From Lepidodermella squamata (lineage: Eukaryota > Animalia > Gastrotricha): DNA of 64,000 nucleotides. The stretch covers positions 5,208,001 to 5,272,000 of the forward strand of contig JBLDXI010000024.1 in the NCBI GenBank assembly GCA_047495785.1, read 5' to 3'. Position numbers and translations under genes: made by a program. The stretch's first letter is position 1, and every line of letters begins with the position of its first letter. Below, piece by piece: positions 5,654 to 42,500 of this stretch. The notes under the pieces were generated by a model. That model saw only the letters and a list, made by a program, of their open reading frames with translations. It had not been told where the DNA came from and did no database searches.

Positions 5654-8600
5654 ATGGACAGTGGCAATCGCAACAGCAACAACAGCAATGGCCGCGTTCT
5701 CTCGACCTCAACACCGCTCAACGCCGCGAATCAGCAGCCGCAAATATCCGCGAAGCCCGGCGCCGCTGTTCTCAACACGCCGTCGCTCTTCGTACAACCG
5801 CCGAATCTGCAACAGCAGCAACAGCCGTCGCCTGTTGTGATGCCGCCGCCTGATGTCGAGCCCATCGACGCCGTGGCGGCGCTTCGATCGCCACTGAGAC
5901 CGATCAACTCGTCGCCGGCTGCTTCGCCCGGCCAGTCGGCATCAGGTTAGCTTAAATTATTTTTTAAATTGTTGAATTTTTTAAAAAAAAAATCGCCGTA
6001 TTTAACAATCATTTTGGTGAAAAAATTTGAAAATTACTGGATAATGGAAGTTTTTAAATTTAGACTTATTAGGAAATTGAATTTCAGTAGCTTGAATTTT
6101 TTGCGGTAATTTACTCAACAAAGGCAGCTAAATTTAAGGTTACTAGGACGGTATTTAATGCTTTCTTGTTCTTATTTTATTTAGCGTTGAATATGAGGTG
6201 TAAAGGTTCCTTTGAAGTTACTACTATGGTACTAGTGCGTTGATACAGATGCTTTCGCTTTCTCTTTTGTCATGTTTTTATGAGCGTTGACCTGCTTTAA
6301 ATCGTTCAGCAGATACATTCCAGCTTTGACTTGAATGGCCTAATTTTTCTGGATTTCCCAAATTATTCGACGGTGAATGCTCTAAGATAAAGCACCCTCT
6401 TCCTGTTCAAATATTTAATTTATATTTTAACGGCGTGGTACCGATCGAAATACAGAAATTTTCGCACTTGAGCATAAGAAGACGTTCGCCAAGGTCTATG
6501 CCCATTTTACTAACTCGAAAAAGTATGCAATTGATATACCGTAGCGCGGGATAATTTTTGACAAAACCAAGTTTCTAATTTCAACGATTATCTTAAAAAA
6601 GGAATCAATACTTCATATTGAAATTTTCCAAATTTTAAAACATCGAATTAAAGATTTTTATTGTTGCCAATATATAATTGGAATTTTTCTAGGAGCTATA
6701 AAGGTTGATGTTGATGACTTTCCAGGCGCAGTTCGGCCGAACCGGGTGGTGACAGCGCTGCGGCTTCCGACCGTCAGCGACTACTCGCAGCAGGAGCCGT
6801 CGACGGTGAACCAGAGCCAGACGCTGCCAGGCGGCGGCCAGTCGGCCAGCAACAACGCCACGTCGTCGTCGCTGCTGTCGGTCGCCTCGCCGTCGCCGTC
6901 GCCGGCCGACCGCGGCGTGGGCGGAGCCGGGCGGCGGCCGCGGCCTCGCCACGACTCGGAGTCGGAGAACCGCATCCTAACGCCGACGGCCCACCGCCGC
7001 ACCGTCTACACGGCCGGCCGGCCGCCCTGGTACGACTGGCAGGGCAACAACGGCATGAACGGCGAGACGGCCCTCGCGCCCGACAAGAAGCCGTTCGTCA
7101 TCGGCATTTGCGGTGGTTCAGCTTCAGGTAAACTCGAAAAACGAACACTAAAAATGCAGATCAAACTGAATTTTATTCGAATTCTTCAAGTGACAACATT
7201 TCAACTTGCTTATGGAATATTCGCTATTTTGGACACCTGATACCATTAGATATAAATGACAATTTTCACTGCCGATATCTGAAAATCACTGATTTGTGAA
7301 ATCAATAACAAATCGATATTTGGTCTGCAGGCCGAAAAATTTGGGATTTAAAGGAAGGAACTTGAAAACCCATGTTGGGGAGATATTTTTGTGCTGGGAT
7401 CAAAATTGGAGGTTTACTTATTTAATTTATTTATTGTAAAATTCTTTTCGCAAAATGTCAATGTTTTTCACGTCTTGTTTACTAAAAATATAGCTATGTA
7501 TCCCATTATTTGGACAACACATTTTCATACCTTTTTATACCCTTTTTACCGTTGAAATATTTACTTTTTCGGCTTCAGGTAAGACGACTGTGGCGAAGAA
7601 AATCGTTGAAGTGCTGGACGTGCAATGGGTGTCGCTCGTGTCGATGGACTCGTTCTACAAAGTGCTGGACGACGACCAGCACGAGCGAGCCCTGCGCTCC
7701 GAGTACAACTTCGACGCCCCGTCGGCCTTCGACGTCGAGCTGCTCGTCGACACGCTGACGCGGCTCAAGGCGTGGAAGTCGGTCGACGTGCCCGTCTACA
7801 ACTTCACGACGCACTCGCGCGAGAAGCACACGCGAACTATCTACGGTGCCAATGTCGTCATTCTGGAGGTAAAAACTGAATTTTTGCTGTAATTTCTTGT
7901 GAAAAATTTGCTGTTGGAATTTGATAGCATTTTCGATATTAAATCGGAAAAATGTGAAAATTATGCCACATGTCATTAAATATCGTTTCGGGGCAATGGC
8001 CTTTTTCTGGGCTAAATTCTCATATTTTTCGGAGTTATTCGATTTTGACCTCCATAATGTATTTTTCAATTTAACCTAATTTTGTATTTTCGCTTATATT
8101 TTCAGGGTATAATGGCGTTCTGTGATCAATCCCTACTCGATGTGATGGACCTGAGAATATTCGTCGACACGGACGCCGACATTCGGTTGGCGCGGCGGTT
8201 GACGCGTGACATTCTGGAGCGTGGTCGCGATCTCGAGGGCGTCCTCAAGCAGTACAACAAATTCGTAAAGCCAGCGTATGAAAACCACATCGAGCCGACG
8301 CGGTGCAAGGCCGACATTGTCGTGCCTCGGGGCGGCGACAACCAGGCTGCGATCAAGCTCATCGCTCAGCATGTGCACAACCAACTGGTGGCCCGCGGCA
8401 ACACGGGCATGCGCTCCAAGCTGGGCGCCCTCGGCGGCGCCAATGGCTGCACACACCCGTGCGGCAACCCGAAAACGTTGTATGTCCTCGAAAGCACGCT
8501 ACAGGTGAGCTGAATCTAAATTCTCAGATCAACTATGGGAATCTACTTATACCAATAATTCACTGATTTAATTGAGTAATTAGACAGTCTTTTAGCGGAA

Positions 8601-11600
8601 CCCAGTTTTAATATTTCAAAATTTGGTTGCGCAAAAGAAAGACTTTATAAAACCTATTTCGAGCTAATTAAGTGTGTCCAAGTGAGAGCAACACCGCATC
8701 TTTTCTCTATGAGTCAGTGACAATTTAAAATTTTACCGTTGTACCTCTTCCCATTCCCGATTTAAATTGTCGATTTTTTCATATTCGTTGGCGAATTTTT
8801 CATCGGTTATCTGCAATGTGTGTTTCCAAAGAATTTGCCATAGGTTTTTAAAGTACCCCAATTCCGTTTTTTGTGTGTTATTTTTTGAGACTCATGACGG
8901 TATAGATTTCGGGATTTGACGATGCATGGTTGTTGAATTTTCAGGTGAAAGGCATGCATTCGATCATCCGAAATAAGGACACGTCTCGCGACGATTTCGT
9001 CTTCTACTCGAAGCGGTTGATGCGTCTGCTCGTCGAATACGCCGCCTCGTTGCTGCCCTACCGGCACGCGACGGTGTACACCCCGCAGGCGACGGCCTAC
9101 CCCGGGCAACGCGTCGATGCTGTCGACACTTGCGCCGTTTCTATTCTACGGGCTGGGGAAACTCTCGAACCAGCCGTTCGCTCAGTCATCAAAGACATTC
9201 AAATTGGTAATTTTTATTCCTTAAAAAACCTTGAAAATCTGTATAAATTATGCCGAAAAATATTGTCTTTGGAATTGTATACCGTTTTCAGTAGAAAACG
9301 AGTGGGTTATTGGTGATCGTCAGGTTTCTAACTTGGAGAGTCTTGGATGCTAACACGAGGCGTATTTGTAGGAGGCATAATGTGGGAAAAACGGAGAGAT
9401 TACTATATATCAACTTTTGAATCTTTCCCAGCTTAGATTTATCGTTTAATCCGTCCAAAGCCTATTAGATTCTGGTTAGTTCCCAAGCTTGAAAAATAGC
9501 GAAGAGTCAACGCAATCGTCTCCTTATGAATCATGGGAATTGGTGCTGGAAAAAGTTGAAAATAGCTCACTTCTCTTTATTTTGATTACCTCAATCACTG
9601 AATCCGCAAATTTAGGAGAGTTTATTTGGTGAACTATCAAAACAATCGGTTTCGCATTACTTTATTTATTTGCGTAGAAATTACTAATCGATAATCTTGA
9701 AATATAGGATCAGGGGGAATTTTAGATTAAAGAGTTAACCAAAAAATCAAATAATATTAGCGAGTCATTTTCTCATCAGGTTTTTCTCAGTAGAAAACTT
9801 CGGGGTAGCGGTCGATCACCAGTTTTCTGGTGGAATCATCCATTCTGTCCAATAGGTAAGCTGCAGTTTCGCTGTCTCGTTCAATGGCCGAGTCGGCAGC
9901 TGTGGAACCGTCGTTGCTAAGAACGTTGACATCCGCCCCACGCTCTACCAAGAGTTTAGTCAAGTCGTACGAGAACAAGGCTGCACTGAACAGCGGCGTT
10001 TTGCCTGCATAGTTATTCTTTGCGTTGACAGACACTCCTTTCTCGATCATATATTCGGCGATTTTAAAAGAATCGTTGTTATTATTCGAAGCTAACGGAA
10101 ATAACAGATTTTCACCCGCAAAGTCCACGTCGAAAATCGGAGCCCCGTGGTCGATGAAAAACCTGAACGTGTCATAATCGCAGATTGCCATCAATCTCAC
10201 GAGAGCCGTTCTGTCGAACCTGTTTTTGATTCGTAACGACGCTCCGTTTTCCACCAGAACTCGAGCCATTGAATTGCTCTGCGACAAAGATAGCAATGTC
10301 TCGTCGAATTGAGGCAGAGGCTCGTTCAGCCGATAAAGACTCGCGTCGGTTTTTTCAAACAATATTTTCAATGCCTGATCGCCAGTTTTTTCGTTGTACG
10401 TGGCGGCGAACGCTGTGTCGTACTCTGAACCGGAGATGGAGACCTTGTTACTCAGCAACAAATCGATGAGTTGAGGCGCATATTCAGTATTTCCTATCGC
10501 CATCGGGAACAACTCAGGGCCTACTTCCGCCTGCCCGTTTTGCAAGAGCGAGGCGAGCCACGCAACTGGACTTTCGCTCTTCATGACATGTTGCATCCAA
10601 CTGAGCTTCAAACTCCTGGTCCAGCCTCGAGTAGCTAGCAGGGTTTCGTGATTTTCAACGACTAGTTTTACGAGTGATAAATTTCTCTCATCAAAAAAAA
10701 GGCTAGTATAGTTTGAAGTGATCGTCAAATTCATAAGCATAGCACCGGGTGAGTTTGGCTCAAGGTAGGGCTGCAAGAACGTCTCGAGAGTAGCCTTCCG
10801 GTTCCTTGCTAACCACTGTAATATTTCTTTGTTGTTCGATTCCAGAAGCAGTTTTTTGTAGAATAAGCCATCTGCTGGAGTCACACCTTGTGCAATGAGA
10901 AAACGAATGATTTCCATGTCTACAGTTCGCAGCATGAAGTATTGGCGGACCGCTATGTCCAGCAATGATTCGCCATCTGTCGTCTTGTCGTTCACAGATG
11001 CGCCGTTTTTCATCAGAAATTTGATCATTTCCAGCTTATTCTTCAGGTTGTAGCCTACAACAGCACCCATGATAGGCGTCATATCGAATAAACCTTTCGC
11101 ATGAATCTGAGCTCCGCTTCTCAGGAGAAATTCAGTGATTTCAATAACCGCAGATTGCGCTGCGTAATGAATAGCCGAAAAATTGTACGCATCTCCTTTG
11201 TGAACTGAGGCGCCTTTTTGAACGAGCATTTTGACGATCGCCAGGCAATTATTGGCGTTCCTGCGGTTGCATCTCGCAGCTTTGTGCATGCACGTTACGC
11301 TCTCGTTTCCCACTTTCCATCTCGGATCAACCAAGTTAGTGTTGAGTTTACCCTTGATTTCCAGCAGGCGCGTCAATGATTTGAACTCTGAGAAATTGCC
11401 GCTCTCGCACGCGTCCATCCAGCGGCCGTTGATGCGAAACAGTGAACTAGCATTCAGAGGCTGCGTTAAATTTGAAAAGTTATCTTTTTTGGTACTAGGG
11501 TTGGCTTAGTTTACCAGTGATGATGAGCTGATGGCTAAGCTAGGCTGGATCGCGATCGTCAACAGAAAAATAATGGACAGCAGCATTTTAGTCAGAACTT

Positions 11601-14600
11601 CAGAAATATTATAAATGAAGACAATGAAAAGTGATGTGCAAATCTACACAGATATACGGAGGGGGCGGTTATCGTGTGAAAATTGGCGTCTTGTTAATCC
11701 GATTGTAGAGCTTTCCCAGGTAATGCTCGGCTATTGTGCAAAATATGTTTCAGCCCTGCACTGAAATGTGGGAAATTATTTGCCATAATGTGCTTTCGTA
11801 TTTTAATTGCACGGTTCATGCTAGTCAACTTGACGATTTTTAACCAAAATATATTCTAGGTCAGAAACGGTTAGTCTCCAGTTAAATTATATAAATCTCG
11901 AAGGAATGAAAGGCTGAATGATGAAGCATCACTTTCAAGCTTGAGACTTCCCTAGAATTAGAGGGATCAAGTCAACTTCTGGCGTGTTTCGGACATGTCG
12001 CCATAGTTTCTTCATCTGCTATAATTTTTTCATACCATAAGACGCATTTTATTCAAGGATAAGGGATTCACTTATTTTTCAGAATTTGAAGCATATTGGG
12101 AAGATTAATTAGGTATTGTATCAATGCATGGAATTATAGCTGCTTGCAAGAAAGTAAAAAGAATATCAGTTTTCGCGGGAGCTCTTAATTAGTAACACCG
12201 GCATTACTGTTAGGAAAGTCAATTATCATCGATCATTAGTTCAGAACTCCCGGCCGATTCTTCATGGTTTGCGCGATCGCCGACTCGGACATCCTGTCCA
12301 GTAGATAAAAAGCGGAATCGGTATTTAATCCTATTGCTGCATCGAGGGCAGTCCTGTTTGCATTGTTGACCACGTTGACATCAGCACCTTTGTCCACAAG
12401 CAGTTTCAAAATGTCACTTCCAGGATTAGTAGCAGCTCCAAATAGTGGCGTATCGCCAGTTCGGTTGTTCCTGCCATTGACGGAGATGCCCTTGTCGATC
12501 AAATATTGAGTCAGGTCCTTGCAACTTGTTGCATAAAATAGCAGGCTTTGGTTGTCCGAATCAACGTCGTAAATCGAGGCACCACGATCGATCAGGTACA
12601 AAAACGTGTTGTATAAACATAGAGGAGCTACCGCCATTAATGGGGTTTTGTTACTATTCATTCTCAGCTTCAACGACGCACCAGCCTCTACTAGCCTGGC
12701 TATTTTCCCATTATCTGTAAATCGCCAATGCTCCATCCGAGCCATCGTGGCCAAACGGCGTTCAGATATTGGCGTAAATTCGCTTTCTCGAATAGAAGAT
12801 TCAGTGCTCGACTTCCGTTAGGATTACTAACCGCCGCTTCCAATGTATCAATTTCAGCTCCTGCTATCGAAACATTGTATCTTAGCAATAGGTCCAGTAA
12901 TTCGGGTGCAAATTGGCTGTGCTCAGCTGCCTTCGGGTAAAGGTTAGCGCCAATTTCGGTCCCATTATCCAGCATTTCTTTCAACAACTGCGTAACATTT
13001 TCGCTGCTAAAAATTCGAGTAATTTTTGAAACGTGGTTCCATGGGAAGTCGAAAGTTGCATAGATGGCATTTCCAATATGGGGTCTCATATTATTATTTA
13101 GAACAACCTCCGTGATATTTGTAGTATTCGCCATTGCGAAGACTGGTTTCAAGTTTTCCGTGTATGGCTGAAAGTACGCTTCGAGTTCTTCCGGTCGATT
13201 GATTGCAATCCATTTAAGGGGGCCAAGATTCCTGCAAAACACAGCCCGTCTGATGACATCGTTGTCTACAACAGCGCCATTGTTTACCAGTAGCTCGACA
13301 ACCGCAGTTGGAGCGGCAAAGTTGATGGCATACTCCGCAACGCTCATATTATAGAACGGGCCTATCCGTTCGTTGACAGACAACCCGTGCTTGATAAGTA
13401 GTCGAATCGTGTCTAGTTGATTCGGTCCTTGGATGAAGAGAACTGCGTTGAAAATCGCGCTTTCACCGAACCTGGCCCCGGCTTTGACGTTCGCTCCCTT
13501 CCTGATGAGCAACTCGGCGATTTGAACGCATGCGGATCTCGCAGCTATGTGAAGTGCCGAGCTATTATCAAGGCGAGAACGTGTGTCTATCTTTGCTCCA
13601 ATTGCTAGTAAGTGTTCGATCAATTTCAAACGCGCGGTTGTTGTTGAATTGCCCGCCTTGCATTTAACTGCTTCAAGTAAGCAGTACCCGTCGCTATAAA
13701 AGAGCGGATTGGGCCAGTTAACGTCAAATTTCCCTTTCGATTCCAACTGCGCGGCTATGGTTTTGAATTTTCCCAAGTCGCCATTGTAACACGAATCAAG
13801 CATTCGTAGTCGCATCCGATATCCTTCAGCAGCTTTCGAAGGCTTGAAGTAATAGTACATGCAGTGTACATGCATACATCTGTTTAATATCGCAAGATTG
13901 CTTACCTTCAAAATTGGCGGGAAGCCGTTGCCAAATGCTGTTGAAGCTACACTCGAAAATAGCAATATTAGAATATTTCCGTTCATGTTCATGACTGTCA
14001 CTTGTTATAATAAATTTCTCCTGGCTTATATAGCCCAAATTATCTTTCAACACATAGGTGTAAAGTTGCATCCTGATCGTGGGAAAGTTTTAAGCGCTAA
14101 GCCGATTACCCCTCGCGGGAAAAATAGCTGGGAAGCGTTTTTTCAGATTTTTCTTGTTAATGACGTTGAATCTCAAAACCAAACCAGCAGGCATTTTTAC
14201 GTTTGAGATGCCGTCCCTAATATATTATTAACCCCGGGTTCGATGCAATAGATGATTGATGTGACGAAATACGTGAGAGGGTGGTTATCGTGTGAAAAAT
14301 GGCTATGATCCGGTTGATCCGATTAGAGATCTTTCTTGGCTCCTCGTTATGGAAACGAAGCCCCACTAATGGTTTGTGGGGAACATTATACCTAATGCCT
14401 CGAATGATAGTCGCAAGTTCACCGTGGGAAAGTGCTTTTTATTTCATATCGCATTAATGATATATCGATACATTACGCTCTCGGTATATAACGCATTTTA
14501 TTGAATAATAGGCTTGTTATTTTCAAATGTTGAAAATTATAGGCTATTGAAGGAAAAAGTTGTGAGTTATGTTAAGCGTAAAGTTTTTGCATATTGGAGA

Positions 14601-17194
14601 TTAAGAAAATTAATTCAAGCGGTCTGAAATCTAAATTTCATCAACGTTGGTATTGATAAGGTTGATCAGTTGAAAACTGAAGGATGGTTTTTCACCGTTC
14701 GCTCGATAGCCGATGGTGACATATTGTCCAACAAATACATACTGAACTCGCTGTTGCATGTTATCGCTGCATCCAGCGCAGTTTGGTTGGCATAGTTGGC
14801 CGCATTGACATCGGCACCGTGGTCCACCATCATTGCCACAACTTCGCGTCGATAATTTGCAGCTGCCGAAAATAGGGGCGTATCGCCAGTTCGGTTATTC
14901 CTGCCGTTGACCGAAATTCCTTTATCAATCAAATACTGCGTCATTTCCTTGTTCTGTAACGTGTAAAAAATCAGGCTTTGGTTGTCCGAATCGACGTCGT
15001 AAATCGAAGCACCCCGGTCGATCAGATACAGAAACGTTTCGAAGGAGCACAGGGAAGATACTGCCATGAGTGGGGTCCTGTTATTCCTTAATCTCAGCTT
15101 CAATGAAGCACCTGCATCGGCTAATCCTCTTATGTTTATATCATTTACGAGTTCCAAGTCTAGCGTGCGATCGAGCCATCGCGGCCACACAGCGTCGAGG
15201 TATTGGCGAAGATTCGCTTTGTCGAATAGTAAATTCAAGGCTTGCTTCCCATTGGGATTGATCACTGCTGCCTCCAAAGTTTGAATTTCAGCCCCGGCCA
15301 TCGATACGTTGTAGCGCAACAATAGATCCAATAGTTCGGGTGCGAACAGCCTGTGGGCAGCTGATCTGGGGTAAAGGTACGCTCCAATATCGGTCCCATT
15401 CTTCAGCATTTCTTCCAGCAATTGCGAAACATTTTCGCTGCGGAAAATCCGAGAAACCTTGGAATATGGGCTCCATTGATATTGGGACGTTCGACTAACG
15501 GCACCGGATAAAAAGGGTCTCATATTATTATTCAGAATGACTTCCGTGATGTTTGTAGTATTGGCCATTGCGAAAACTGGTTTCAAGTTCTCCGAGTAGG
15601 GCTTGAAGTACGCTTCGATTTCTTCCGGTCGATTGATTGCAAACCATTTCAGAGGGCCAAGATTCATGTAGAACACCGCTCGGCCTATCACATCGTTGTC
15701 TACAATAGCACCGCTGTTAACTAGTAACTCGACTACGGCAGTTGGAGCGCCGAAGTTCATGGCGTATTCCACGACGCTCAAGTTGTAGAACGGGCCTATC
15801 CTTTCGTTGACAGACAAGCCATGTCTAATGAGTAATCGGATCATGTCGAGTTGATTCGGTCCTTGGTTGAAGAGGACTGCATTGAACATGGCGCTCTCGC
15901 CAAAGAGCCCCGGCCTTGACATTCGCGCCGAGTTTGATGAGTAACTCTGCGACTTGAACGCATGCGGATGTCGCCGCTATGTGAAGCGGTGACTCGTTGA
16001 CGTCTGAGCGTGCGTCAATTTTTGCTCCATTTGTTAGCAAGTATTCGATCAGTCTCAGACGTGATGTTGGGGAATCGCCGGCTTTGCATTTTGCTGCTTG
16101 CAGGAGGCAGTAGCTGTCGTTGCGCTGGTTCGGGTTAGCCCAGTTAGCATCAAATTTTCCGTTCGATTGCAGCTGCGCGGCTATAGTCTTGAATTTCTCC
16201 ACATTGCCGCTGTAACAGGCGTCAAACATTCGAAGCCGTAATCGAAATATGTCAGCAGCATTTAAAGGCTTTAAACGAAAATCAGCATAGAAACATATAT
16301 TGTAAAATCCGATTTCATACCTTGGTAGCTGGCAGGTATCCGTTGCCAAAGACGGTTGACACTACAATCGAAGCTAGAAATATCGATATATTCCAGTTCA
16401 TCTTTATGACTGTCGATTTATTATGTTTTCTCCTGTCTTATATAGACCTTAATTTCTTGGAAAAAGTGGATCCTGATTGTGGGAAAATTTGTCCTGCTAA
16501 TCCGATAATCCCTCGCTGGGAAAATATATCTGAAAAGCTCTTTTTATATTTCGCGGTTTAATGGCGTAATTTGGAAAATTATAGGCTGCTTTCCTGGAAA
16601 GCCACGCCTCATTAAGGACGCAGAAACCTTCCCTAATTATGGTTTTCATATTTATAAGCCTCTCTCTATCGATTCCATTATTGATTTTCGAAAATAATCG
16701 ATTATCGATCGTTCCTTATGGGAGTTGCCTAGGATCTGCCCTAGGTCAGATTAATTGTTGAATTATCGATTATCGGCTATCGATTATCGATTATTTGTTT
16801 TTAAAAATCAATCATCAATAATTTTTCTAATTTTCGTCGTTTTTGTGCAGGCAAGATCTTAATTCAAACAAATGCGGCGACTGGCGAGCCCGAGCTGCAC
16901 TACCACCGACTGCCGCACGACATCGCGTCCGCGCACGTGCTGCTGCTGGACGCGACCGTGTCGACGGGCTCGGCCGCCATCATGGCGATCCGCGTGCTGC
17001 TCGACCACGACGTGCGCGAGGAGAACATCGTGCTCGTGTCGCTGCTGATGGCGCAGGTGGGCGCGCAGAACGTGGCCTACTGCTACCCGCGCGTCAAAAT
17101 GGTGACGACGGCGGTGGACGCGACCCTCGACGAACAGTTCCACATTGTGCCAGGCCTCGGCAACTTCGGCGACCGGTTTTTCGGCACCGATTAG
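5654..17194 (+). CDS. UCKL1: Uridine-cytidine kinase-like 1 (uridine kinase + UPRTase domains, 6 exons, ~673 aa)
   Basis: Exons 5654-5945, 6693-7127, 7579-7868, 8106-8504, 8945-9206, 16851-17194 total 2022 nt in frame. Motifs: [22 protein letters not shown]-loop, [55 protein letters not shown]. Confidence 0.95.
7270..7337 (+). repeat. Interspersed ATCGAT-rich repeat fragment (copy 1)
   Basis: gaaaatcactgatttgtgaaatcaataacaaatcgatat...tgcaggccgaa matches the reverse complement of 40228-40298. Confidence 0.55.
8586..8644. repeat. Miniature remnant of the GCGGAACCAAAT foldback/MULE-like family
   Basis: tcttttagcggaaccc...atttggttgcgcaaaaga forms a hairpin resembling both termini of the element at 49650-49998. 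Confidence 0.45.
9787..11586 (-). CDS. Signal-peptide-bearing ankyrin-repeat protein 1 (2 exons, ~581 aa), nested in UCKL1 intron 5
   Basis: Exon 11586-11515 encodes [25 protein letters not shown] 54-nt GT-AG intron follows, then exon 11460-9787 with many ankyrin repeats ([34 protein letters not shown]). Frame intact. Confidence 0.88.
12236..13992 (-). pseudogene. Signal-peptide-bearing ankyrin-repeat protein 2, frameshifted
   Basis: Exon 13992-13906 ([23 protein letters not shown]...), 63-nt intron, then ankyrin exon from 13842. Versus paralog 3, the segment after WPRWL is 44 nt instead of 48 (~12695-12740), splitting it into ORFs 12700-14001 and 12236-12754. Confidence 0.78.
14666..16401 (-). 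pseudogene. Signal-peptide-bearing ankyrin-repeat protein 3, frameshifted
   Basis: Exon 16401-16321 ([27 protein letters not shown]), 52-nt intron, then ankyrin exon from 16268. About 2 nt are missing at ~15905-15910 relative to paralog 2 (KAGARFGES), splitting it into ORFs 15825-16349 and 14666-15922. Confidence 0.78.
16668..16820. repeat. ATCGAT/TATCGAT-rich quasi-palindromic repeat (MITE-like)
   Basis: Multiple ttatcgat/atcgataa units arranged around a central cctagg-containing spacer. Confidence 0.4.
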
Positions 17195-22574: not shown

Positions 22575-24299
22575 TCATAAATCCGTCGGAGCCTCACAAT
22601 CTCGGCGCTGTGATCCATCTGGACAATCGCAAAGCATAGCAGAACAACGTTTCGCATTCTTGCAGTCGCAGATGGCTATTTGATTAATGAGACCTAAAAA
22701 GTAGCTATATCATGTAAGTATGATAAGAAATTACGGCGATCGCAGTCCGCGCCGGTTTTCCACTTGTCAAAACATGTGCATGTGTTCGGAGCTGTGCAGT
22801 AGGCTAGTCTCGAACAGACGGTTGAGCCACATACCTCTGGATCACGAAAACGTTGAAGTTATTGGCGTTAAAAATATGCAAACTCACGCTGATCGCAGAA
22901 CTGTCCAGTCCAGCCGACTTTGCACTGGCACGTGTTCGTACCAACGCAGTAACCATTTGCGCAACCCAAGGGTTTACAAGATGGTTTGACTGCAATTTTA
23001 CTGTTTATCACCGAGATACCCGAGTGTTTCGAATATACTTACAGAGCTTATACACCCGCACATCGATAAGGCGAATGGGAAAGTAGGTGCCAGCATTTAT
23101 TCCATTGATGTAAAGCACAGGCGGCTGCATTCTCGTGTCGTTGATTGGCAAAGCTCTAGGCAGAGTTAGCCCGCTGAAAATCGCCGTGCAAGACACATTA
23201 TTGCACATGTCGATCCAGACTCTACTCCCGCCCCTCACGACTATCCCTATGTGATGACGGCCCTTGATTGCCATCGGGTTAAGCGGTACGCGCGGCTGCG
23301 CGTTGAAGTCACCCGTATTCACGGGAATACTGGATGGCGATGAGATAATTTGATAACCTTGTCGGTAGCTCAAGACTCTCAGCAAGAATCCGGCAAAGTT
23401 GGTACTATTAAAAGTGGTTGGCATTGAAGTTGCTACATCGTACGAGACTGAGGAGTTGGACAGAACGCCAATATAGTACTGATCGGTGTCGCTACCCACC
23501 GGCGCATCAATTTGCATCGTTACATTTATCGAAAAGTCATTCAGCAGGAATAGCTGCATAAATTTTTAACCCAGAAAAATATGCTTAATAAATGGTTGCA
23601 GTTTTTGACGAAATTTGGATACATTTTTGTTAATGAAGGTCGTGTAAGTTGTCGCTGAATTGTATGTTAAGAATATTTCGTTCTCAGGTCCAAGCACACT
23701 AATCGGCATGTTGCTTTTCCATATCCAGTTGGAATCTATTATAAATTCAAATACTCTATGCGAGGTTAAAAGTCGCATAATACTGTAATTGCCGTCGCCG
23801 ATGTATGAGAATTCGGGCAAGTACTCGGATGGAGCAACCATTGGTCCATTCACTTGATAATTTTTCCCCATATAAGCAGGCCATTGTGCGCGATATGTTT
23901 AACATTATTTACCTTGCGAGCAATCTGAGCCTGAGAAACGAGCGATACATTTGCAAACGTTTGTTGCATCGCAGACGCCGCCTCTTGGTTGACAACGTGG
24001 CGAACATGCTATTTGATAAAAAGGAAACGCAACAATTTTATCAGACAAAAAAACAGTGTACTTTTTAATGACTTTCGGTAAACGCTTATAGTTGATTTGA
24101 TTAATTCTTAAACAGTGCAGTGTCCGAACATTATTTTTGTGCTTTTGATGAAATTTTATGTCAGAATTCAGTAATGAAAATCCCTTTGCACGATGCGGGT
24201 TGGTCTATAATCTTGGGCAATAGTTGTCGGATATGTATTACCTTGAGAGGAGATCTGTATTAGCAGTAACACGATAAAGCCTGAAAGCCTGAGTTTCAT
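22575..24299 (-). CDS. Secreted EGF / LamG(ConA)-like / 3x Cys-rich EGF-like protein, paralog 1 (8 exons, ~383 aa)
   Basis: Exons 24299-24242, 24008-23913, 23852-23784, 23735-23623, 23553-23043, 22989-22888, 22836-22735, 22675-22575 join in frame. Signal peptide MKLRLSGFIVLLLIQISSQ; EGF modules (CKCIARFSGSDC, CQCKVGWTGQFC); beta-rich core with GRHHIGIVVR and LIDVRVY. Confidence 0.82.
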
Positions 24300-26010: not shown

Positions 26011-26083
26011 CGCCCGATGTGGGGCTCGAACCCACGACCCTGGGATTAAGAGTCCCATGCTCTACCGACTGAGCTAACCGGGC
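26011..26083 (-). tRNA. tRNA-Lys(CTT)
   Basis: GCCCGGTTAGCTCAGTCGGTAGAGC...CT CTT AA...GGTTCGAGCCCC...CGGGCG; full cloverleaf with downstream T-run. Confidence 0.97.
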
Positions 26084-26173
26084 TTAGCCGACATAGCTGA
26101 TGACTAGGGCAGGTTCAAAGACCCAAATCAGGCATGCGACATGAGTCAGAGACAGAGAGTGTGCAAAAACATT

Positions 26174-26246
26174 CGAGGCTGCCAGGAGTCGAACCTGGAA
26201 TCTTCTGATCCGTAGTCAGACGCGTTGTCCATTGCGCCACAACCCC
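26174..26246 (-). tRNA. tRNA-Arg(ACG)
   Basis: GGGGTTGTGGCGCAATGG...TCTGA CT ACG GA TCAGA...GGTTCGACTCC. Confidence 0.96.
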
Positions 26247-26324
26247 ATGATGTTGATCATCACATAGCATCAAATCGTTGATGATACGTACAGCGTCGCA
26301 GCATGGGAAAAAGCATAAAATGCA

Positions 26325-26408
26325 TGTCAGAAGTGGGATTCGAACCCACGCCAGTAGAAACTGACTGCGACCTGAACGCAGCGCCTTGGACCGCTCGGCC
26401 ATCCTGAC
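26325..26408 (-). tRNA. tRNA-Leu(CAG)
   Basis: GTCAGGATGGCCGAGCGGTCCAAGGC...CTGCG TT CAG GT CGCAG, long variable arm, GGTTCGAATCC. Confidence 0.96.
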
Positions 26409-26574
26409 GGGATGGTGGAATAGATTGATATCCCGCAGACGACATTTCGCAAAGCCTAGAGCGTCGCCACAAAGTAGGTTAATTACCTGTTGCCTGTTGC
26501 CAATATCAAACTTGAACTAGCCAGCAATGTCGATCAGGGTGTATCGTTATTGAAACTGCTGAAGAAGCACTCAA

Positions 26575-26656
26575 GTCGCTATGCCCGAGTGGTTAAGGGG
26601 TCTGACTAGAAATCAGATACGGTCTCCGCGCGTAGGTTCAAATCCTACTGGCGACG
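26575..26656 (+). tRNA. tRNA-Ser(AGA)
   Basis: GTCGCTATGCCCGAGTGGTTAAGG...TCTGA CT AGA AA TCAGA, long variable arm, GGTTCAAATCC. Confidence 0.95.
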
Positions 26657-26731
26657 ACAGTTATTTTTGCATTATAACGACTGAAACTCAGTTCTGCAGT
26701 TAGCCTCCAGAACAGTCCTCGCTTTCATCAG

Positions 26732-26788
26732 GCGTCAGCATGGTTGCCTTCCAAGCAGCCGATCCGGGTTCGACTCCCGGCTGACGCA
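26732..26788 (+). pseudogene. tRNA-Gly(TCC) lacking the D-arm (57 nt)
   Basis: Perfect acceptor stem GCGTCAG/CTGACGC, anticodon arm GTTGC CT TCC AA GCAGC, T arm CCGGG TTCGACT CCCGG. Only CATG lies between the acceptor and anticodon stems. Confidence 0.85.
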
Positions 26789-26867
26789 CACGTTTTTAGC
26801 TCACGCGTTTGAAAGAAATTGCTAGTGACGAGATTAAAGCTGTCCTTCCCAAAAGCAGCGTTCGAGA

Positions 26868-26939
26868 GGTCCCATGGTGTAGCGGTTAGCACTCTGGACT
26901 CTGAATCCAGCGACTCGAGTTCGATTCTCGATGGGACCT
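26868..26939 (+). tRNA. tRNA-Gln(CTG)
   Basis: GGTCCCATGGTGTAGCGGTTAGCAC...CTGGA CT CTG AA TCCAG...TCGAG TTCGATT CTCGA TGGGACC T. Confidence 0.95.
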
Positions 26940-27043
26940 TGATACGTTTTTTCAAACAAACTTTCAGCTCACTCACTCTCAGCTGATAGAAACTTGCGAT
27001 CGCAATATTTGTTACCATTCAAACCTTTTCTTTCACTAGCCTA

Positions 27044-27115
27044 GGGGGCATAGCTCAGTGGTAGAGCGTCTCATTCGCATTGTGAAGGTCTCGGGTTCAA
27101 TCCCCGATGCCTCCA
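27044..27115 (+). tRNA. tRNA-Ala(CGC)
   Basis: GGGGGCA/TGCCTCC acceptor stem with the G3:U70 Ala determinant; anticodon loop TT CGC AT; one T-T mismatch in the anticodon stem. Confidence 0.9.
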
Positions 27116-27205
27116 GTTGGCACTTTTTCGCGTAAATGTTGAGAAGTAACAGCCATAATACTGATGATATGAATCGGAAATAAGTCTAAGCATGCGAAAA
27201 AAGAG

Positions 27206-27289
27206 TGTCAGAAGTGGGGTTCGAACCCACGCCCTCTTTCGAGGACCAGATCTTGAGTCTGGCGCCTTAGACCGCTCGGCCATCCTGAC
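27206..27289 (-). tRNA. tRNA-Leu(CAA), intronless
   Basis: GTCAGGATGGCCGAGCGGTCTAAGGC...CCAGA CT CAA GA TCTGG, long variable arm. Confidence 0.95.
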
Positions 27290-34403: not shown

Positions 34404-37400
34404 TCAGGCAACGGGCGTTGTCGAGTCCACGCCACCGCCGTTGCTGTTGTTGTTATTGTTGTTGTTATTTTTCGACTCTTCTGCTTCGGCTTTGCGGCTA
34501 CTGTGACTACGGCTGCGACTTCGGCCGCACGGCCACCAGCGTGAAGCGCGCAGCTCGGCGACGACCATGCGGCCGACGCCGAGCGTCGAGACGATGCAGC
34601 AGCCGACGAGGAAGTGGAACACGTACGCCCAGCCGAGCGCCTGTTCGATGAGCGGGATCGCGATCTGGCCCAACGCCGCGCCCGCGCTCCCCGTCCCGTC
34701 GATGATGCCGCTGTTTTTGTTTGATGAAAGAGCGCAAATAATCAACGAAACAGTAGCCTCAAATTGCCTAGATCTATTAGGGCGGTTGTTTGCAATACGA
34801 TTTATCATTCACTTATCGGCCGGAAATTAGAATCATGATATATCTAACTTTTTTACGCTACAGAAGCCGTACGACATGAAAATATGGTCAAATACGACAT
34901 GATCGTTAAAAACTGGAATTTATTACAGTATTGCATTCCAATTTAGGAAAAAATTATTTTAAATGAATCGAAATTAAAATTGAGCATCCCTAAACCCTAA
35001 ACCAGAATATCTTCTAGCAAAGTTTCTAGCTGCGGCATTTTTGTTCGGGAAAAATGTAAGAAAATGCTTCAAGCTTTCATTTGAATCTACTTTAGCAAAA
35101 TTAGACTATAATTTGAGCTTTCGCAATTAAAAAGGAGACATGGCGTCCCTCACTTTTGAAATTTCAACTTTTTGAAGAATTTTTCCTAAAATTGCATAAT
35201 TTGCTCGCAATTTCACAGAAGAAATAAAAAATTTACCGAAGAGAACCCGGAAATACCCAATGAAAAATCGTTGTCTAATTTTCGATATTTTACCAGGTTA
35301 GACCAAATTTTCATGTTCACACTTAATTATCAATCTCTTGGATACAATGACCCGAAAATGTTGAAATTCCACAGTAGGGAGAAGAAGAATACATATTAAT
35401 GCACATCATCAGTAAAATGGTAAAAATCTCAAGTAGAGAAAATGTCAATTTAATACATTATATTTAATAACTAATGTGGTAATTGGGCATGGGCAAAAAA
35501 TCTGGACAAATTTTGACTTGGCAAATGAACTTGTTTTGTGGTGCAAGTGGGGATAATGGGTCATACCTGACGGTGGCGAGTGCCGACCTGCTGTTGTTCA
35601 GTTGCGGGTGCCTGCCGAGATCGGCCGCGACGGCGCTGCTCAGCAGGTTCGCGACGCCGCAGATGCAGAAGCCGACGATGAACAGCATGCCGGCATTCAG
35701 CAGCTTATCGGCCGGCAGCACTATATAACAACAACGGCATAGAGTGACGAATTAGCACGGTAACATGGGTATGAGAAAAAGCTCTCGCAGGAAAAAAAAT
35801 AACACATTAAAACAACTCATCATAGCAGCTAGATTAGCTAACACATTTTCGCAGGTGCGAAAAAACACATTGCAAATATTGCAATAATATTTAGAAAATT
35901 CGTAATATGTTGAAATTAAATTAAAGAAAAAATCCCAGTATTTTTTATTCTTGAAAAGCATCGTAGAAACTCGAAAAAATAGATTGAACCAAAAACAAAT
36001 AGAACTAAATTCCAAGAAATAAAGACTACTGGATAATTTGAGAAGTTACACAATAAGGCTACCTCTTCCGTTGCAATCCTAACAGTTCAACTCGTCAATA
36101 AATCTAGAACATTTGAATGAAAAATCGATAAAACTCACTGTTGTAGATGATAAAAGCCGGAATGCCGAGTAAAAGCATAACAAATAAAACCGGAGCTCGG
36201 CGTAATCGATCCTGAATTTGTGTAAAAAAGCATATTTTCCTGGTTTTCGACAATGTTCGAGAAACAAACCGAAATAACACCACCAATTATACTGCCTAGA
36301 ATGCCACCAATATCGTACCAAGTCGATAAATTGTCCGAATCAGCTTGCGACCAATGAAATTGACGGTTGAGGTAGTAAGGCAGCCAGAAGAAGAACGCGT
36401 AATTCACCAATTTCAAACACGCATAGGCCAACGCATACTAAAATGCCATTTCCAAGTGAAATTCAACGTAAAAATCTCAGGAAATTGCTTACCATAATCA
36501 CTCCAGGTAATAAGAGAGCTTCTAAAAACCCGACAGCTCGCAATTTTGTGGGTTTCTTTCCCGTTTCTAGTTGTTCTGGTGACGACGGAGTATCGGGCGA
36601 ATCGGAACTTTGAGCTCCCTCTATCACTTCAACCATTCCAATTTCTTTCAGCAGGCTCTCGCCCGCTTTCTCTTCTTCGTCGTCCTGCGTTGGCCTCGCG
36701 ACTTCAGTTATTGCTAGAGTATTATCAGGCTCTGCTATGCCGACTTCAGCCGGTGAGACGACAAGCCCAAAGAATAAAATGATAGTAAAAGCGACCATGA
36801 TAGCCGCAGGTACCACTACGGCGATTTCGTAGCCGTAATCGACGAAACTAGCGACTAAAACTGATCCAATGATGTTTCCGACCGACGAATTCGAACTCCA
36901 GACGCCGAGAATGAAGCCACGGTTGTTCGGGAACCAGTTGCCCATTACGGCGAGAACGCACGGCCAGATTGGCCCCTGAAACATGGCGTTTAACGCCCAG
37001 AATACGATGTAATAGTAAATTGAGTAGAAACCAATCCATTCTGGAACACTGGCGAAGAGCACAACAGTCAGAGCTGCACCGGTCATGGAAGCGCATAGTA
37101 AATAACGGAGGTCGAATCGGTCACCGATAATACCACCGATGTACAGAGAAGCTGCGTAGATAATCATAAAAACAGTATCCAAGGCGCCGAGGAAGGCTTT
37201 GCATGATTTGTCATTGCTGCTAGGGAAAAACTGGTGAGCAGACCAGGTTTCCTCGGGAGCCTTCAAACGAACTGTTGCGTTTGAAAATGCGGGAGACCAT
37301 TCTTCGGAGACGAGGACTTTGACGTTGGAGAATGACTTGCGGTTAGCATGGACAAGCGCGTATGTGATGAAGGTCAGAATGAAAACAGAAACGTGAAATT

Positions 37401-37461
37401 GAGTATAACCAGACTGCTTGGGCAAGCAAGAACACTTTTTCTTTTTCAGTTCCTCTTTCAT
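34404..37461 (-). CDS. SLC37A3: Sugar phosphate exchanger 3-like MFS transporter, copy A (5 exons, ~556 aa)
   Basis: Exons 37461-36493, 36437-36270, 36211-36139, 35720-35567, 34710-34404 total 1671 nt in frame. Motifs: HANRKSFSNVK, GDRFDLR, AVMGNWF, YACLKLVNYAFFFWLP, AADLGR, GIIDGTGSAGAA. Confidence 0.92.
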
Positions 37462-38435
37462 CTCCAAACGTCTAATCAGTAAAAACAAAAATATATCGGA
37501 TGAAAATCCAATAATTATTAAAGATAGAAAAGCAGAGAGCAGAGAGATTTCATTAAGAAGCGCTGCAAGTTCTTGCCTCTGAAAAACATCTTCGTTAATC
37601 TTGAAAAAAGATTATTTTGGATAGATAGGAATTCTCTGGTTGTTGCTTTTGTGCTTTTGGGTATGAAAAATGAATAAAGCCAGCCGATTTATCACGAGTT
37701 AAGCCAATCCATAGCTTCTTTCACGTTACACGGCGCAGACTCCTCCGAGTTCCGTTTCAAATACTTTAGAAGTTTGAGGTCCTAGAGATGAATCGTTGTC
37801 ACTGCAGTTTGCTCAACATATTGAACATCACTTGAACTACGATCAAAGGTCATAGGTCAGTGGTCAGTAACTAGGGCAACTATATACTATATTATTATCG
37901 TTATTGCTGCCAAAGTAGTTAATCAGCGTTGTAGCTTGTGGCGATATCGTTAGGGAGAGTTTGTTGGTAAATTGCCTCAGGAAATGTAACAATGCGGAGT
38001 CATTAACGAGGATAACGGGTCAGAGATACAAAATCGATCCAAAGATCCGCAATCCCGCAGACCGCAAAACCGAAAAATCGAAAAACCGAAATAACACCGG
38101 TGATCAAATTTCGATCATTCATTTGTTCTTAGCTTATATTTTCAATATTTTCAAAATAAAATCAAACATTTTAGTAATTAAGTTGAGAATTCGACGATTA
38201 TGGATATGTTTCAAAAATATTTAACATAATACTTTGTCGCAGTAAAACTTCAAGCGTTGCCATGGTTACGAGTTTAGCGTCAATTCTTCGAGACCAGGAG
38301 AAGGTGGCACCTCTTCGGACGATTCTTTATCTAGCGGTTCCATTGGCAGTGGAACTCTACTTCAGAACGGGGGCCGACCTCACCTGAACTAGACCACTAC
38401 GCCCGAAGTCCTCGCCAAAGAAGAAGAGTTGGAGA

Positions 38436-38468
38436 GAAAGATTGGTGGTTCGAGCCCACCCAGGAGCG
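38436..38468 (+). pseudogene. 3' half of a tRNA-Asn-like gene
   Basis: GAAAGATTGGTGGTTCGAGCCCACCCAGGAGCG followed by a T6 run matches the 3' half of eukaryotic tRNA-Asn(GTT). No 5' half or anticodon upstream. Confidence 0.65.
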
Positions 38469-39516
38469 CAATTTTTTATTTGCTGCCTAAGTCATAGCAG
38501 CCTGCATTGAGCTCCCTAGCTAAGCTAAGTTAAGCTTCGACTTCAGCACATGCTGACATCATCGCCATTCATGGCACAAGACCGCACTCGCTGATAGAAT
38601 TTTTTCAGAGAACTCAAAACAACCTCACCTGAGAACATGTTAAAATGCCAATGAAGATTTTTTCCCGATCGACATGCTACAGTGCCAATGCAGAATTACT
38701 CTACCCTGCAGAAATGGAAAATGAAACATGGGAAGAGGTATAAGGGCCCTTTCTTTTCTTAGAGTAAATATCAAACGATAGCTTCGCCAGCTGGTGTGCT
38801 CTCATAATACGCAATGCGAATCAGGCCGGCATGCTTGAAACCAATTTTTTCTTTCAACGCATCCATATATCCTGTCGCCCTTAGTACTTGGAAAATATCC
38901 GAGCCGAAAACCAGCGGAGAACCTCGGACCCTTTGAGAACGGCAGCCTTATGGCCACGCAGTCCGATAGTGCATCACATGACCGCATATTCCCATCCTTC
39001 GCTATCAGGCTCATCATTTTCACATTACCGTCCATCTACAAGAATTCATTGCATTTGCGAATAAAAATACGCTTTTCCTTGTAAAACGATGCCATTTATT
39101 GCACCAACCGGTGATCTGTTCATGAACATTACAGCCAACATTGATCCAAAAGTGGTAGTTTTTAACAGCAGAAGACAATCGTAAGTAATGATATGATATC
39201 AATTCAAGTACAATAAATCAATCAAACATGCAACACAAAAATCGGTTATTAAATGAATCACCGCCTTGATCATAGAAAAAACATCACAACGCCATTTGCT
39301 ATCAGCAGCAGCAACATCCGGTTCAACTGTATAAGTAACTAAATAAGTTCCTCAGTAAAAATATCGAAATTATCAGAAAAGTTTGGACTAAAAAGCAAAA
39401 TATACACCGTTTTTTCTGGTTACGGAAGTTTTCCAAAATTAATGCTGTTTTGGTTGAAGTTGGAATAGAAATAATTCGAAAATTCATCGGTACTAAAATT
39501 GATTTAGTAAAACAAG

Positions 39517-42500
39517 CTATTCGTCAGCATCTGTCGTAGCGCCGTCATCTTCGTGAACCATCAACGGCCTGCGATCAGCCCGCGACGACCCGCTGCGATC
39601 CAAGCACCGCCGGCACGCATGGCCTAGGCTTGACTCGCGAAGTTCGCGATATACAATAGGCGAGATGCAAACAGCAGTCAAAGCTGTGCAAACGATGAAC
39701 ATCCAGAAAACGGCGTCCCAGCCGAGGGAATGCTCAAGCAGTGGAATCAGCAGTTGGCCAATCGCAGCTCCAGCACTGCCAGTACCATCCAGGATTCCGG
39801 TAACGGTGGCGAGAGCGGCAGTGTTGCCTCGCAGCTTCGGCTGCCGGCCCAGATCGGCGCAAACAGCTGCCGAAATGATATTGGCGACACCGCCGATGAA
39901 GAACCCTAAATAAAAAGAAAACTTTAGAAAAAAACCAACAAAATGAAGGCCACAGAGGCGCGCATTTCGGGCTACTGATAAAACATGAAAATGACGATAT
40001 CGCATGCCATTTGGCGAACCCCTGGGAAGCCCGCTTAGCATAAGTTTGGCTAATCGGGGAAGAAATCAGATTGATTTGCCAACAGAAATTGTCCACAAGT
40101 GGGGTTTCAGCTACAATTTAGAACTTCACCACTAGATTTACCAAAAATACGGGGTTTCGAGTTTTGACGTATTCACTGCATTTGTTGTTGTCATTTGCGC
40201 AATGAGCGGTCTGTAAACGAGATATACTTCAGCCTGCACAGTCGATATCGATTATAATTATCGATTTTACAAATCAGTGATTTTTCCGAAATCAGTCGAC
40301 TTGGAGCATCAATTATTTTTCTACATAGCCTAGGGCATTATGTAGCTAAAATAAAAATTCGAAGTTCAGAAAGGGCTTAGTATCGATCAACGAACGAAAA
40401 AGGAAAAAGCTGAAATCGCAAAGATTCGAAAAAATTAGTGTCAAGACATTTCTTTTTAGCGCCTGATTTGGTGCACTTGGTGGTGCAAATACTTGGACCC
40501 AACTTTTCCGAATCCTAATAAAACCGAAAAATACCCTACTCTTTTCTCTTGCATGAATCTCCCGCATTTTTGCGTAAGAAATTCTTTGTGTTTTTTCAGT
40601 GAATTCTCACCTAGAATGACGAGGACAATGGCGTTGATGAGCATGTTGTCTGGCAGGGCCTTGTAGACGAGGAGCGTGGGCAGCGCGAGGATGAGCATGA
40701 CAGCCATGACGGGGGCGCGGCGCAGTTTGTCGGAAATGATGCCGCCGACAATGCCGCCGATGATGCCGCCGAAGTCGTACCACGTCGACAGGTAGTCGGC
40801 CGTCGACTGCGACCACGAGAACCAGTGGTACAGGTAGTAGGGCAGCCAGAAGAAGAACGAGTAGTTGACCAGCTTCAAACACGCGTACGCCACAGAGTAC
40901 TGCGAGAAACAAAGCAGGCAACAATTAAGAAGTTAAAAAATATTTTAAAAATTCACAAAATAGCCTATTTAAGGGAATCTGGAGATTTGAACTCTGGAGA
41001 TTTGAAAATTTGATTCAAGAGTTAGAATTTTTAGGAAAATTGATCAATTTGTTGACTAACGATTATGACACCCGGCAGCATGAGCGCCTCGACAAAGCCG
41101 ACCGCCTTCGCCGGCTGCTCGTCCTTGCCGTGGTGATGGCCCGATTTGTGCTGCTGAACCGGATTCGTTAGCTCCGAGTTCGGCGGCGCGATGCCCGCAA
41201 ATGACGCGCCGGTCGGCAGAATCGCCGTCGTTTCACCCGCAACAGGTTCAGGATCTTTTGGCACCGGTAAACCTGAAATACAAACAAATTTAAATGAATT
41301 TTAGAAAACCGTTTTTTTCGACAAAAAGCGTATTGTTTAATTAAGCTGCCCCTCAACCGATCGGCAGTGATTTCTTTTAAGTATCACGCGAAAGGGGAGA
41401 AAAACGTAAAAATAAACACGGTGTAGTTAAAGGTCACACTATAGAAGCCACTCAGTAAGTTATAATTATTTAACGCCTGCAATTACTTTGTTTAATCGAT
41501 TTTAGTTGCATCAAACTACCTTGGCGGCGTAATTTGCGCGGTGGCGCTGATTATCATGGTCCATTTTAATTAATTAAAACATGCGATACAAATAATGTAA
41601 GGGTCATGCAAAAAATGCGACGAACCTATTTCGGCGGGCGACACGACAAGACCCGTAAAAATGACGATGCCAGCTGCGAACAGCAAGATAGCTGGTACCA
41701 GCATAGCGATTTCATAGCCCATGTCGACGAAAGCACCGGCTATTCTGAGATTGGAATTGAATAATTGCTGAAATGATGTACAACAATCGGATGAAAAATA
41801 CTCACAGTGAACCTAGAATATTGCCGACAGAAGCGCAGGCGGACCAAACGCCGAATATGAGACCACGATGTGACTAGAAAACAATAGAAAACATGATCAT
41901 TTTCATAATTTGCAAAATTATTGCATTTCGTTTCAAGCTCAACATTGAAAAACATTCATTATATTTTCCTCCACATTTTTTACACTTTCATCAGCATTTT
42001 TGCTCTCCAAGGTAAATTTCTTGAATGCGAAATGTGGGAAAAATCGGTGTTTTAACACGTGATATTACCAAGGCGTAAAAATCGTGGGAATTACTAGCAG
42101 ATGTTACCGTCGGCCAGAGATTACCGTCGGAAAACCTCATTTTCCCGAGATTCAGTGAACAGTTTACCTAATCTCGAAAATCTTTCACGGGTTATCTCGG
42201 CTTTCGGCGCCACTAACCATCTCGAGGGAAGAATTTTTCAATAATTACATTAAATTAAATTACATTATTTCACTTTTGCTGATTTTACTAAGTTTTCATA
42301 TTTTTGGCAAGGCGTAATATTTCGCATGTAGTTAAAATTGTGTAGCAATTGTTACCTTGCCATACCAGTTGCCCATCACGGCGATAACAGCTGGCCATGC
42401 CGTTGACTGGAAGAGGCCATTTAGCACCCACAGCGGCACGTACCTAGAATAAATAAGTAAACAAACAAGTAAGCAGCTATAAATTGGACTGGCAAAAGCC

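Follow-up and report, generated by a model that had tools for sequence, protein, structure and literature searches.

Three tandem ankyrin-repeat genes with putative signal-peptide exons, nested in an intron of a UCKL1-like gene of the gastrotrich Lepidodermella squamata

Here, we describe a group of ankyrin-repeat (ANK) genes in a 64,000-nt stretch of DNA from the gastrotrich Lepidodermella squamata (GenBank assembly GCA_047495785.1, contig JBLDXI010000024.1, positions 5,208,001 to 5,272,000 of the forward strand). The whole stretch is referred to below as the window, and positions are counted from its first letter. At 9787-16401 on the minus strand lie three colinear ANK paralogues arranged head-to-tail, all of them nested, antisense, in one intron (9207..16850) of a UCKL1-like gene. 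Each opens with a short exon that reads like a signal peptide, and the predicted products probably enter the secretory pathway. A preliminary description of this DNA had already called the genes tandem paralogues, and this was confirmed; copies 2 and 3 recur at a spacing of about 2430 nt. The parts of the three genes are as follows:

9787..11586, minus strand: copy 1, whole gene, defined by reading, Pfam ANK matches, and an AlphaFold2 (AF2) model; the sole intact copy
11586..11515, minus strand: copy 1 exon 1, 24 codons, signal-peptide-like leader
11514..11461, minus strand: copy 1 intron, 54 nt, phase 0, GT..AG
11460..9787, minus strand: copy 1 exon 2, 557 codons and a stop, open throughout
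12236..13992, minus strand: copy 2, whole gene, Pfam ANK matches on both pieces; colinear over its full length with copies 1 and 3
13992..13906, minus strand: copy 2 exon 1, 29 codons
13905..13843, minus strand: copy 2 intron, 63 nt, phase 0, GT..AG
13842..12236, minus strand: copy 2 exon 2, with one frameshift
14666..16401, minus strand: copy 3, whole gene, by reading, with Pfam ANK matches on both pieces
16401..16321, minus strand: copy 3 exon 1, 27 codons
16320..16269, minus strand: copy 3 intron, 52 nt, phase 0, GT..AG
16268..14666, minus strand: copy 3 exon 2, with one frameshift

The separate first exon and the phase-0 intron at the same site in all three genes, both part of the preliminary description, were recovered on reading the sequence, with GT..AG boundaries and intron lengths of 54, 63, and 52 nt. 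A homologous proline codon is the first codon of exon 2 in three of three copies. We accept the interruption as an intron because it is common to the three paralogues. The copies differ in what intron retention would do: in copies 1 and 3, it would lead to stops, and in copy 2, where the intron (13843-13905, minus strand) is a multiple of three and stop-free, the frame is kept and a leader-bearing protein would still be encoded.

The statement that there are three ANK genes stands insofar as three paralogues are present, but copies 2 and 3 are frameshifted and only copy 1 is intact. The predicted product of copy 1 has 581 amino acids (aa) and is an ANK-type solenoid from end to end. In the assembly, a single frameshift splits copy 2, and another splits copy 3, into two overlapping reading frames, and neither gene contains an in-frame stop; the two pieces of each were aligned, folded, and counted separately. 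As the present assembly reads, a full protein could come from copy 1 only. These frameshifts are either very recent or an assembly error. The longest homopolymer where the reading frames overlap is 4, and a typical homopolymer sequencing error is therefore not the obvious cause.

Frameshifts in two members may point to a decaying cluster, that is, a family being lost, with copies 2 and 3 as true pseudogenes and with the traits described below as relics without present function. The single frameshift in each copy, the homopolymer runs of 4 or less, and the lack of an orthologue in the searched collections are all in keeping with it. We nevertheless consider decay improbable, given the way in which the two copies have diverged. 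Copies 2 and 3 share 68% aa identity, with an omega of 0.19 at a dS of about 1.0 across 533 colinear in-frame codons; they were therefore functional over almost the whole of that divergence, and any pseudogenisation must be very recent. In-frame stops and large deletions are absent, and copy 1 is intact. By thirds of the alignment, omega is 0.22, 0.14, and 0.25, and the highest value among 40 segments of 50 codons each is 0.59, with none above 1. Copies 2 and 3 have evolved under purifying selection, which is strongest in the family-specific centre. Diversifying selection is rejected for this pair, and the earlier suggestion of a diversifying family is not supported. Copy 1 is far more distant, with 34-35% aa identity to copies 2 and 3 and saturated dS.

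The nature of the encoded protein can be assessed from domain and structure searches, the ANK repeat being a helix-turn-helix unit of about 33 residues. Each of the five reading-frame pieces has Pfam matches to ANK families (Ank_2, Ank_4, Ank, Ank_3, and Ank_5) and to nothing else; copy 1 matches Ank_2 at 5.9e-30. A profile search of the PDB returned ANK proteins only (DARPins, ankyrins, tankyrase, NOMPC, and the ANK part of latrotoxin), and all of these matches reflect generic ANK likeness. The AF2 model of copy 1 exon 2 (pLDDT 71) consists of helix hairpins throughout, about 15 units in all, and is of low confidence at residues 197-290 and 373-416, the centre being weak; Foldseek aligns this model to the AnkB and AnkR solenoids. 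The larger in-frame part of copy 3 was modelled with a pLDDT of 80.7 and a pTM of 0.61, again as helix hairpins throughout, and was matched to AnkR D34, ankyrin-1, and AnkB R13-24 over about 400-440 columns (TMq 0.53-0.58). Since this fragment aligns along ankyrin solenoids, the family-specific centre, which Pfam leaves uncalled, is predicted to be a divergent ANK-type solenoid and not some other domain.

The peptide encoded by each exon 1 has a hydrophobic core, 10-14 residues long and free of charge, with a maximum Kyte-Doolittle mean over 10 residues of 2.8-3.0. Beyond the core, and still inside the exon, lies a plausible cleavage site at which positions -3 and -1 are taken by small residues. 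By hydropathy and reading, all three leaders thus combine an h-region of the usual length (about 7-15 residues) and small -3/-1 residues with the absence of a later transmembrane (TM) segment. At this length, the cores are too short to serve as a membrane anchor, and the leaders lack the arginine or lysine that would suggest a mitochondrial presequence. Such leaders are not common in this DNA. A crude leader rule, run on each of the 2045 ATGs that the window contains (128 kb of strand), gave only 12 matches, four of which, at three loci, are the ANK exons. The hydrophobic leader on each gene, as first described, is therefore borne out by hydropathy, the -3/-1 residues, and rarity in the window.

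The mature parts were scanned in the same manner. No TM-like segment is present in any of the three copies (maximum 19-residue hydropathy 1.06-1.46), and their C-terminal ends show neither a KDEL-type signal nor a hydrophobic tail, which agrees with what had been noted before. For comparison, a calumenin-like open reading frame (ORF) elsewhere in the window (44513-45487) does end in a tail of the endoplasmic reticulum (ER)-retrieval type.

There are 8 N-glycosylation sequons in copy 1 and 13 in either of the other two copies, where shuffled sequences give 5.1 on average; in copies 2 and 3, this is 2.5 times the expectation (P = 0.001 and 0.0006, respectively, from shuffles), with the proviso that the two counts are not independent, as these copies are 68% identical. 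Expressed per 100 residues, there are 1.4 sequons in copy 1, 2.4-2.5 in copies 2 and 3, and 0-1.1 in six other long ORFs of the window. Eleven of the 13 sequons are common to copies 2 and 3, a retention to be compared with the roughly 0.55 per site expected from the overall retention of Asn and of Ser/Thr (P about 0.03). The abundance of shared sequons was thus rightly noted for copies 2 and 3, and less so for the family as a whole, since the excess in copy 1 is not significant and only two sequons are common to all three. In the AF2 model of copy 1, seven of its eight sequons fall outside the helices, where 44% of all residues are found.

The conserved cysteines of the preliminary description were also confirmed. 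Four cysteine columns (residues 18, 57, 64, and 427 of copy 1 exon 2) are kept in three of three copies; they account for four of the five cysteines in copy 1, at an overall identity of 34%. Three of them are grouped in the N-terminal cap, with the fourth much farther down the solenoid.

Taken together, the signal-peptide-like exon, the lack of a membrane or ER-retention signal, the sequons of copies 2 and 3, and the kept cysteines make entry into the secretory pathway the best reading of these genes. Several points weigh against it and should be kept in mind. In copies 2 and 3, the reading frame is broken. The splice model derives from reading of the sequence and from its sharing among paralogues, and exons 1 and 2 were analyzed separately. 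The n-region of the leaders has no positive charge. In the only intact copy, the sequon excess does not reach significance (P = 0.13). As one conserved cysteine is distant from the other three, all four cannot pair within the molecule. ANK domains normally fold in the cytosol, and ANK proteins are overwhelmingly intracellular. Finally, each copy retains, about 14 codons past the start of exon 2, an in-frame methionine from which a cytosolic product could be made.

The last of these points leads to an alternative in which the genes encode cytosolic ANK proteins starting at the exon-2 methionine, the upstream exon being untranslated or an accidental hydrophobic ORF. Conservation of this methionine in three of three copies would fit, as would the general habit of ANK proteins to stay inside the cell and a sequon count in copy 1 that is within chance. 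Were the upstream exon of no consequence, however, one would not look for its leader, its ATG, the GT..AG boundaries, and the phase-0 junction to be kept in all three copies despite the saturated dS between copy 1 and copies 2 and 3. The peptide from the acceptor to the methionine is likewise conserved as coding sequence in the paralogues, leaders of this kind are rare by chance, and copies 2 and 3 have both an excess and a retention of sequons. We regard a cytosolic product as unlikely.

Where transcription begins also bears on exon 1. A bipartite block of about 33 nt is found upstream of each gene; the window contains it three times and no more, once per copy, with none expected (100 shuffles). 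Copy 1 is saturated at synonymous sites relative to copies 2 and 3, yet the block has survived in all of them, and it is therefore under constraint. Its retention in all three genes also counts against the decay of the cluster discussed earlier. The regulatory features and the host intron are listed below:

11669..11703, minus strand: copy 1 upstream block, 83-117 nt upstream of the ATG
14074..14106, minus strand: copy 2 upstream block, 82-114 nt upstream of the ATG
16474..16506, minus strand: copy 3 upstream block, 73-105 nt upstream of the ATG
14032..14025, minus strand: TATA-like box TATATAAG of copy 2
16444..16437, minus strand: TATA-like box TATATAAG of copy 3
9207..16850, plus strand: host intron of the UCKL1-like gene, 7,644 nt, phase 1, donor and acceptor read from sequence

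The TATATAAG boxes of copies 2 and 3 are situated 33-43 nt upstream of the ATG, and an AATAAA is found about 190 nt past the stops of the same two copies. The combination of upstream block, TATA-like boxes, and AATAAA suggests independent transcription units that start at exon 1. The second half of the block is present once more at 14285-14297 (minus strand), about 300 nt upstream of the copy 2 ATG, in a form identical to the copy 1 version; it may be a duplication relic or a second regulatory site. In the host gene, the PRK family is matched at 8082-8510, in the uridine kinase exons that run to 9206, and UPRTase at 16937-17191, in an exon that starts at 16851.

The search for relatives covered cluster and representative protein libraries, JGI metagenome contigs, and bacterial and archaeal genomes. 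Against a library of 5.8 billion clusters, copy 1 exon 2 gave generic ANK matches only, mostly to 925-aa proteins of Treponema, and its high-coverage matches are ordinary bacterial or eukaryotic ANK proteins. In an exhaustive search, the family-specific centre gave 19 weak matches among 1.84 billion representative proteins, all of them via generic ANK repeats, and an alignment of the centre found no relative among the JGI metagenome contigs. In the bacterial and archaeal genomes, the scan returned one generic ANK match (residues 1-72) and no specific relative of the centre. On these searches, the family appears to be lineage-restricted, with nothing akin to it in the searched collections beyond the ANK repeat itself. 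The window's own proteins are absent from the searched libraries, and the genome is therefore probably unannotated.

Within the 64-kb window, there are no further copies of the family. An unrelated ANK ORF does occur at 57896-58429 on the plus strand (Pfam Ank_2, 9e-09); tblastn with the three family members gives no match to it. An ANK gene on syntenic metagenome contigs was considered as a relative and rejected, as it is a generic match only and adjoins a protein-kinase gene.

An ANK part that forms a single large exon, genes that sit inside a host intron, bacterial ANK proteins as the best database matches, and no metazoan orthologue found: these may bring to mind a foreign origin, in which the genome acquired an ANK gene from a bacterium or virus and domesticated it through capture of a signal-peptide exon. 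Such a history is compatible with products that enter the secretory pathway. We think it decidedly unlikely nonetheless. The bacterial matches are generic: their identity does not exceed 31%, and then on no more than 28% of the query, and where the full length is aligned it is 20-25%. The centre has no bacterial relative in the searched libraries and genomes. Recent horizontal transfer can be rejected on composition, as the GC content at third codon positions (GC3) of the ANK genes, 0.47-0.56, is inside the 0.44-0.93 of neighboring genes. One should also be careful with ANK repeats in general; they are a recognised confounder of transfer calls, and a recent study that screened for transferred genes excluded them as such (PMC13389597); the bacterial best matches therefore say little on origin.

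The remainder of the window provides the genomic context. The neighbors belong to the common stock of animal genes and include RhoGAP, the UCKL1-like uridine kinase and UPRTase, MMS19, an Egalitarian winged-helix, and an MFS transporter. The best relatives of the calumenin-like ORF are a Logan contig (75% identity) and ENA metagenome contigs (59%); it adjoins an ORF whose counterpart on related metagenome contigs carries Ribosomal_S7. At 36463-47486, the gene order MRPS7, calumenin-like, MFS transporter is kept on the ENA metagenome contigs, which represent a relative of the source organism in environmental samples, with a more compact genome. A cluster of seven to eight tRNA genes on both strands occupies 26011-27289 (Lys-CTT, Arg-ACG, Leu-CAG, Ser-AGA, Gln-CTG, Ala-CGC, and Leu-CAA), including one weak match at 26732-26788 that was made by Rfam only; the Rfam scan of the window returned tRNAs only. 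A further gene, at 23008-24299 on the minus strand, likewise begins with a signal-peptide-like exon, whose ATG at 24299 is followed by a GT donor. It has an EGF-like exon, rich in Cys, near 23920-24010, and its C-terminal ORF is rich in sequons and has no Pfam match. An ORF at 63560-63961 (minus strand) is paralogous to this gene, and the two may constitute a second secreted orphan family.

ANK proteins with a signal peptide have been described in several insects. In the salivary secretome of Halyomorpha halys, the signal-peptide ANK group #2 (OrthoMCL) has 20 members and is the second largest family, and the same study cites ANK proteins in the saliva of the planthopper Sogatella furcifera and the soldier fly Inopus flavus (PMC8207144). 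Among the effector candidates of grape phylloxera, ANK is one of the three commonest domains (PMC7376646), and 43 ANK-domain candidates have been counted (PMC7601026). ANK-repeat regions have been reported from the foam proteins of spittlebugs as well (PMC12911473). In view of these precedents, an extracellular ANK scaffold cannot be called undescribed, as had been proposed for this locus, and the premise that secreted ANK proteins are next to unheard of in animals was too strong, given the insect salivary, effector, and foam families. The kind is already reported in insects, and the trio adds a lineage-restricted family to it.

As predicted from sequence, the three genes pair a signal peptide with an ANK domain, a combination that they share with the insect salivary and secretory ANK effector candidates. 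A close parallel in layout is H. halys group #2, which is also multi-copy, has a signal peptide followed by ANK repeats, and has been proposed as a secreted binder or effector; no sequence kinship beyond the ANK repeat was detected, and no named insect protein is among the copy 1 matches. The phylloxera candidates resemble the trio in being predicted secreted ANK proteins that expanded within a lineage, most of them without homologues elsewhere. Their expansion is far larger, whereas the window contains three copies, of which two have a broken frame.

With respect to structure, the best matches are to the membrane-binding domains of AnkR and AnkB (PDB 1n11, 4rlv, 5y4f, and 7tw3), which share the long continuous ANK solenoid. 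These proteins, in contrast, are cytosolic membrane adaptors with 24 repeats, extra domains, and neither signal peptide nor glycans, and identity to them is 14-17%. DARPins are the top sequence-profile match for the canonical repeats and offer a model of how such a protein may work, namely through a rigid concave binding surface; they are synthetic consensus proteins of 4-6 repeats, unlike the trio with its divergent central repeats that Pfam does not call. Latrotoxins (PDB 7ptx, 9goa, and 9go9) match the profile by their ANK part only. Membership of the latrotoxins was rejected, as the copy 1 product has 581 aa and is ANK-type from the mature start, which leaves no space for the large non-ANK domains at the N-terminus of the toxins; in the latter, these precede about 20 repeats, with some 1200-1400 aa in total. 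The vankyrins of polydnaviruses and other I-kappa-B-like ANK proteins are short, have few ANK repeats, and lack a signal peptide. By this description, they are set apart from the trio, whose predicted product has a leader, about 15 repeats, and 581 aa.

The locus carries a real tandem family of ANK solenoid genes with signal-peptide-like exons which is, on the searches described, restricted to its lineage. We favor, with some confidence, the view that its products are secretory-pathway glycoproteins acting as soluble binders. Each gene would be its own transcription unit, antisense within the UCKL1-like intron, with transcription starting just upstream of the short first exon. Exon 1 would encode a cleavable signal peptide that directs the nascent chain into the ER, where the solenoid of roughly 15 ANK repeats would be N-glycosylated, mostly on its loops. 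With no TM segment, glycosylphosphatidylinositol (GPI)-type tail, or KDEL-type end to hold it, the protein would then be released as a soluble binding scaffold. By analogy with insects, the most likely setting would be that of a secretory tissue product, salivary or effector-like. We infer cleavage of the signal peptide, occupancy of the glycan sites, secretion, binding function, and tissue from these features and parallels. A further-reaching proposal is that a natural extracellular, N-glycosylated ANK solenoid was invented within one lineage, and has no detectable kin beyond it, as a soluble recognition or effector scaffold, and that the kept glycan sites and cysteines adapt a cytosolic fold to the secretory pathway; this we offer tentatively, as a possibility with the odds somewhat against it.

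At present, the secretory-pathway reading is a plausible annotation and not a surprise, as the kind is known and two copies are frame-broken. If the proteins are truly secreted and glycosylated, the locus would be a compact and genomically clean case of a cytosolic repeat fold moved into the secretory pathway, with leader exon, phase-0 intron, shared promoter block, and conserved sequons all in one place. It would then also place a sequence-orphan family beside the secreted ANK proteins of arthropods, which are themselves poorly understood.

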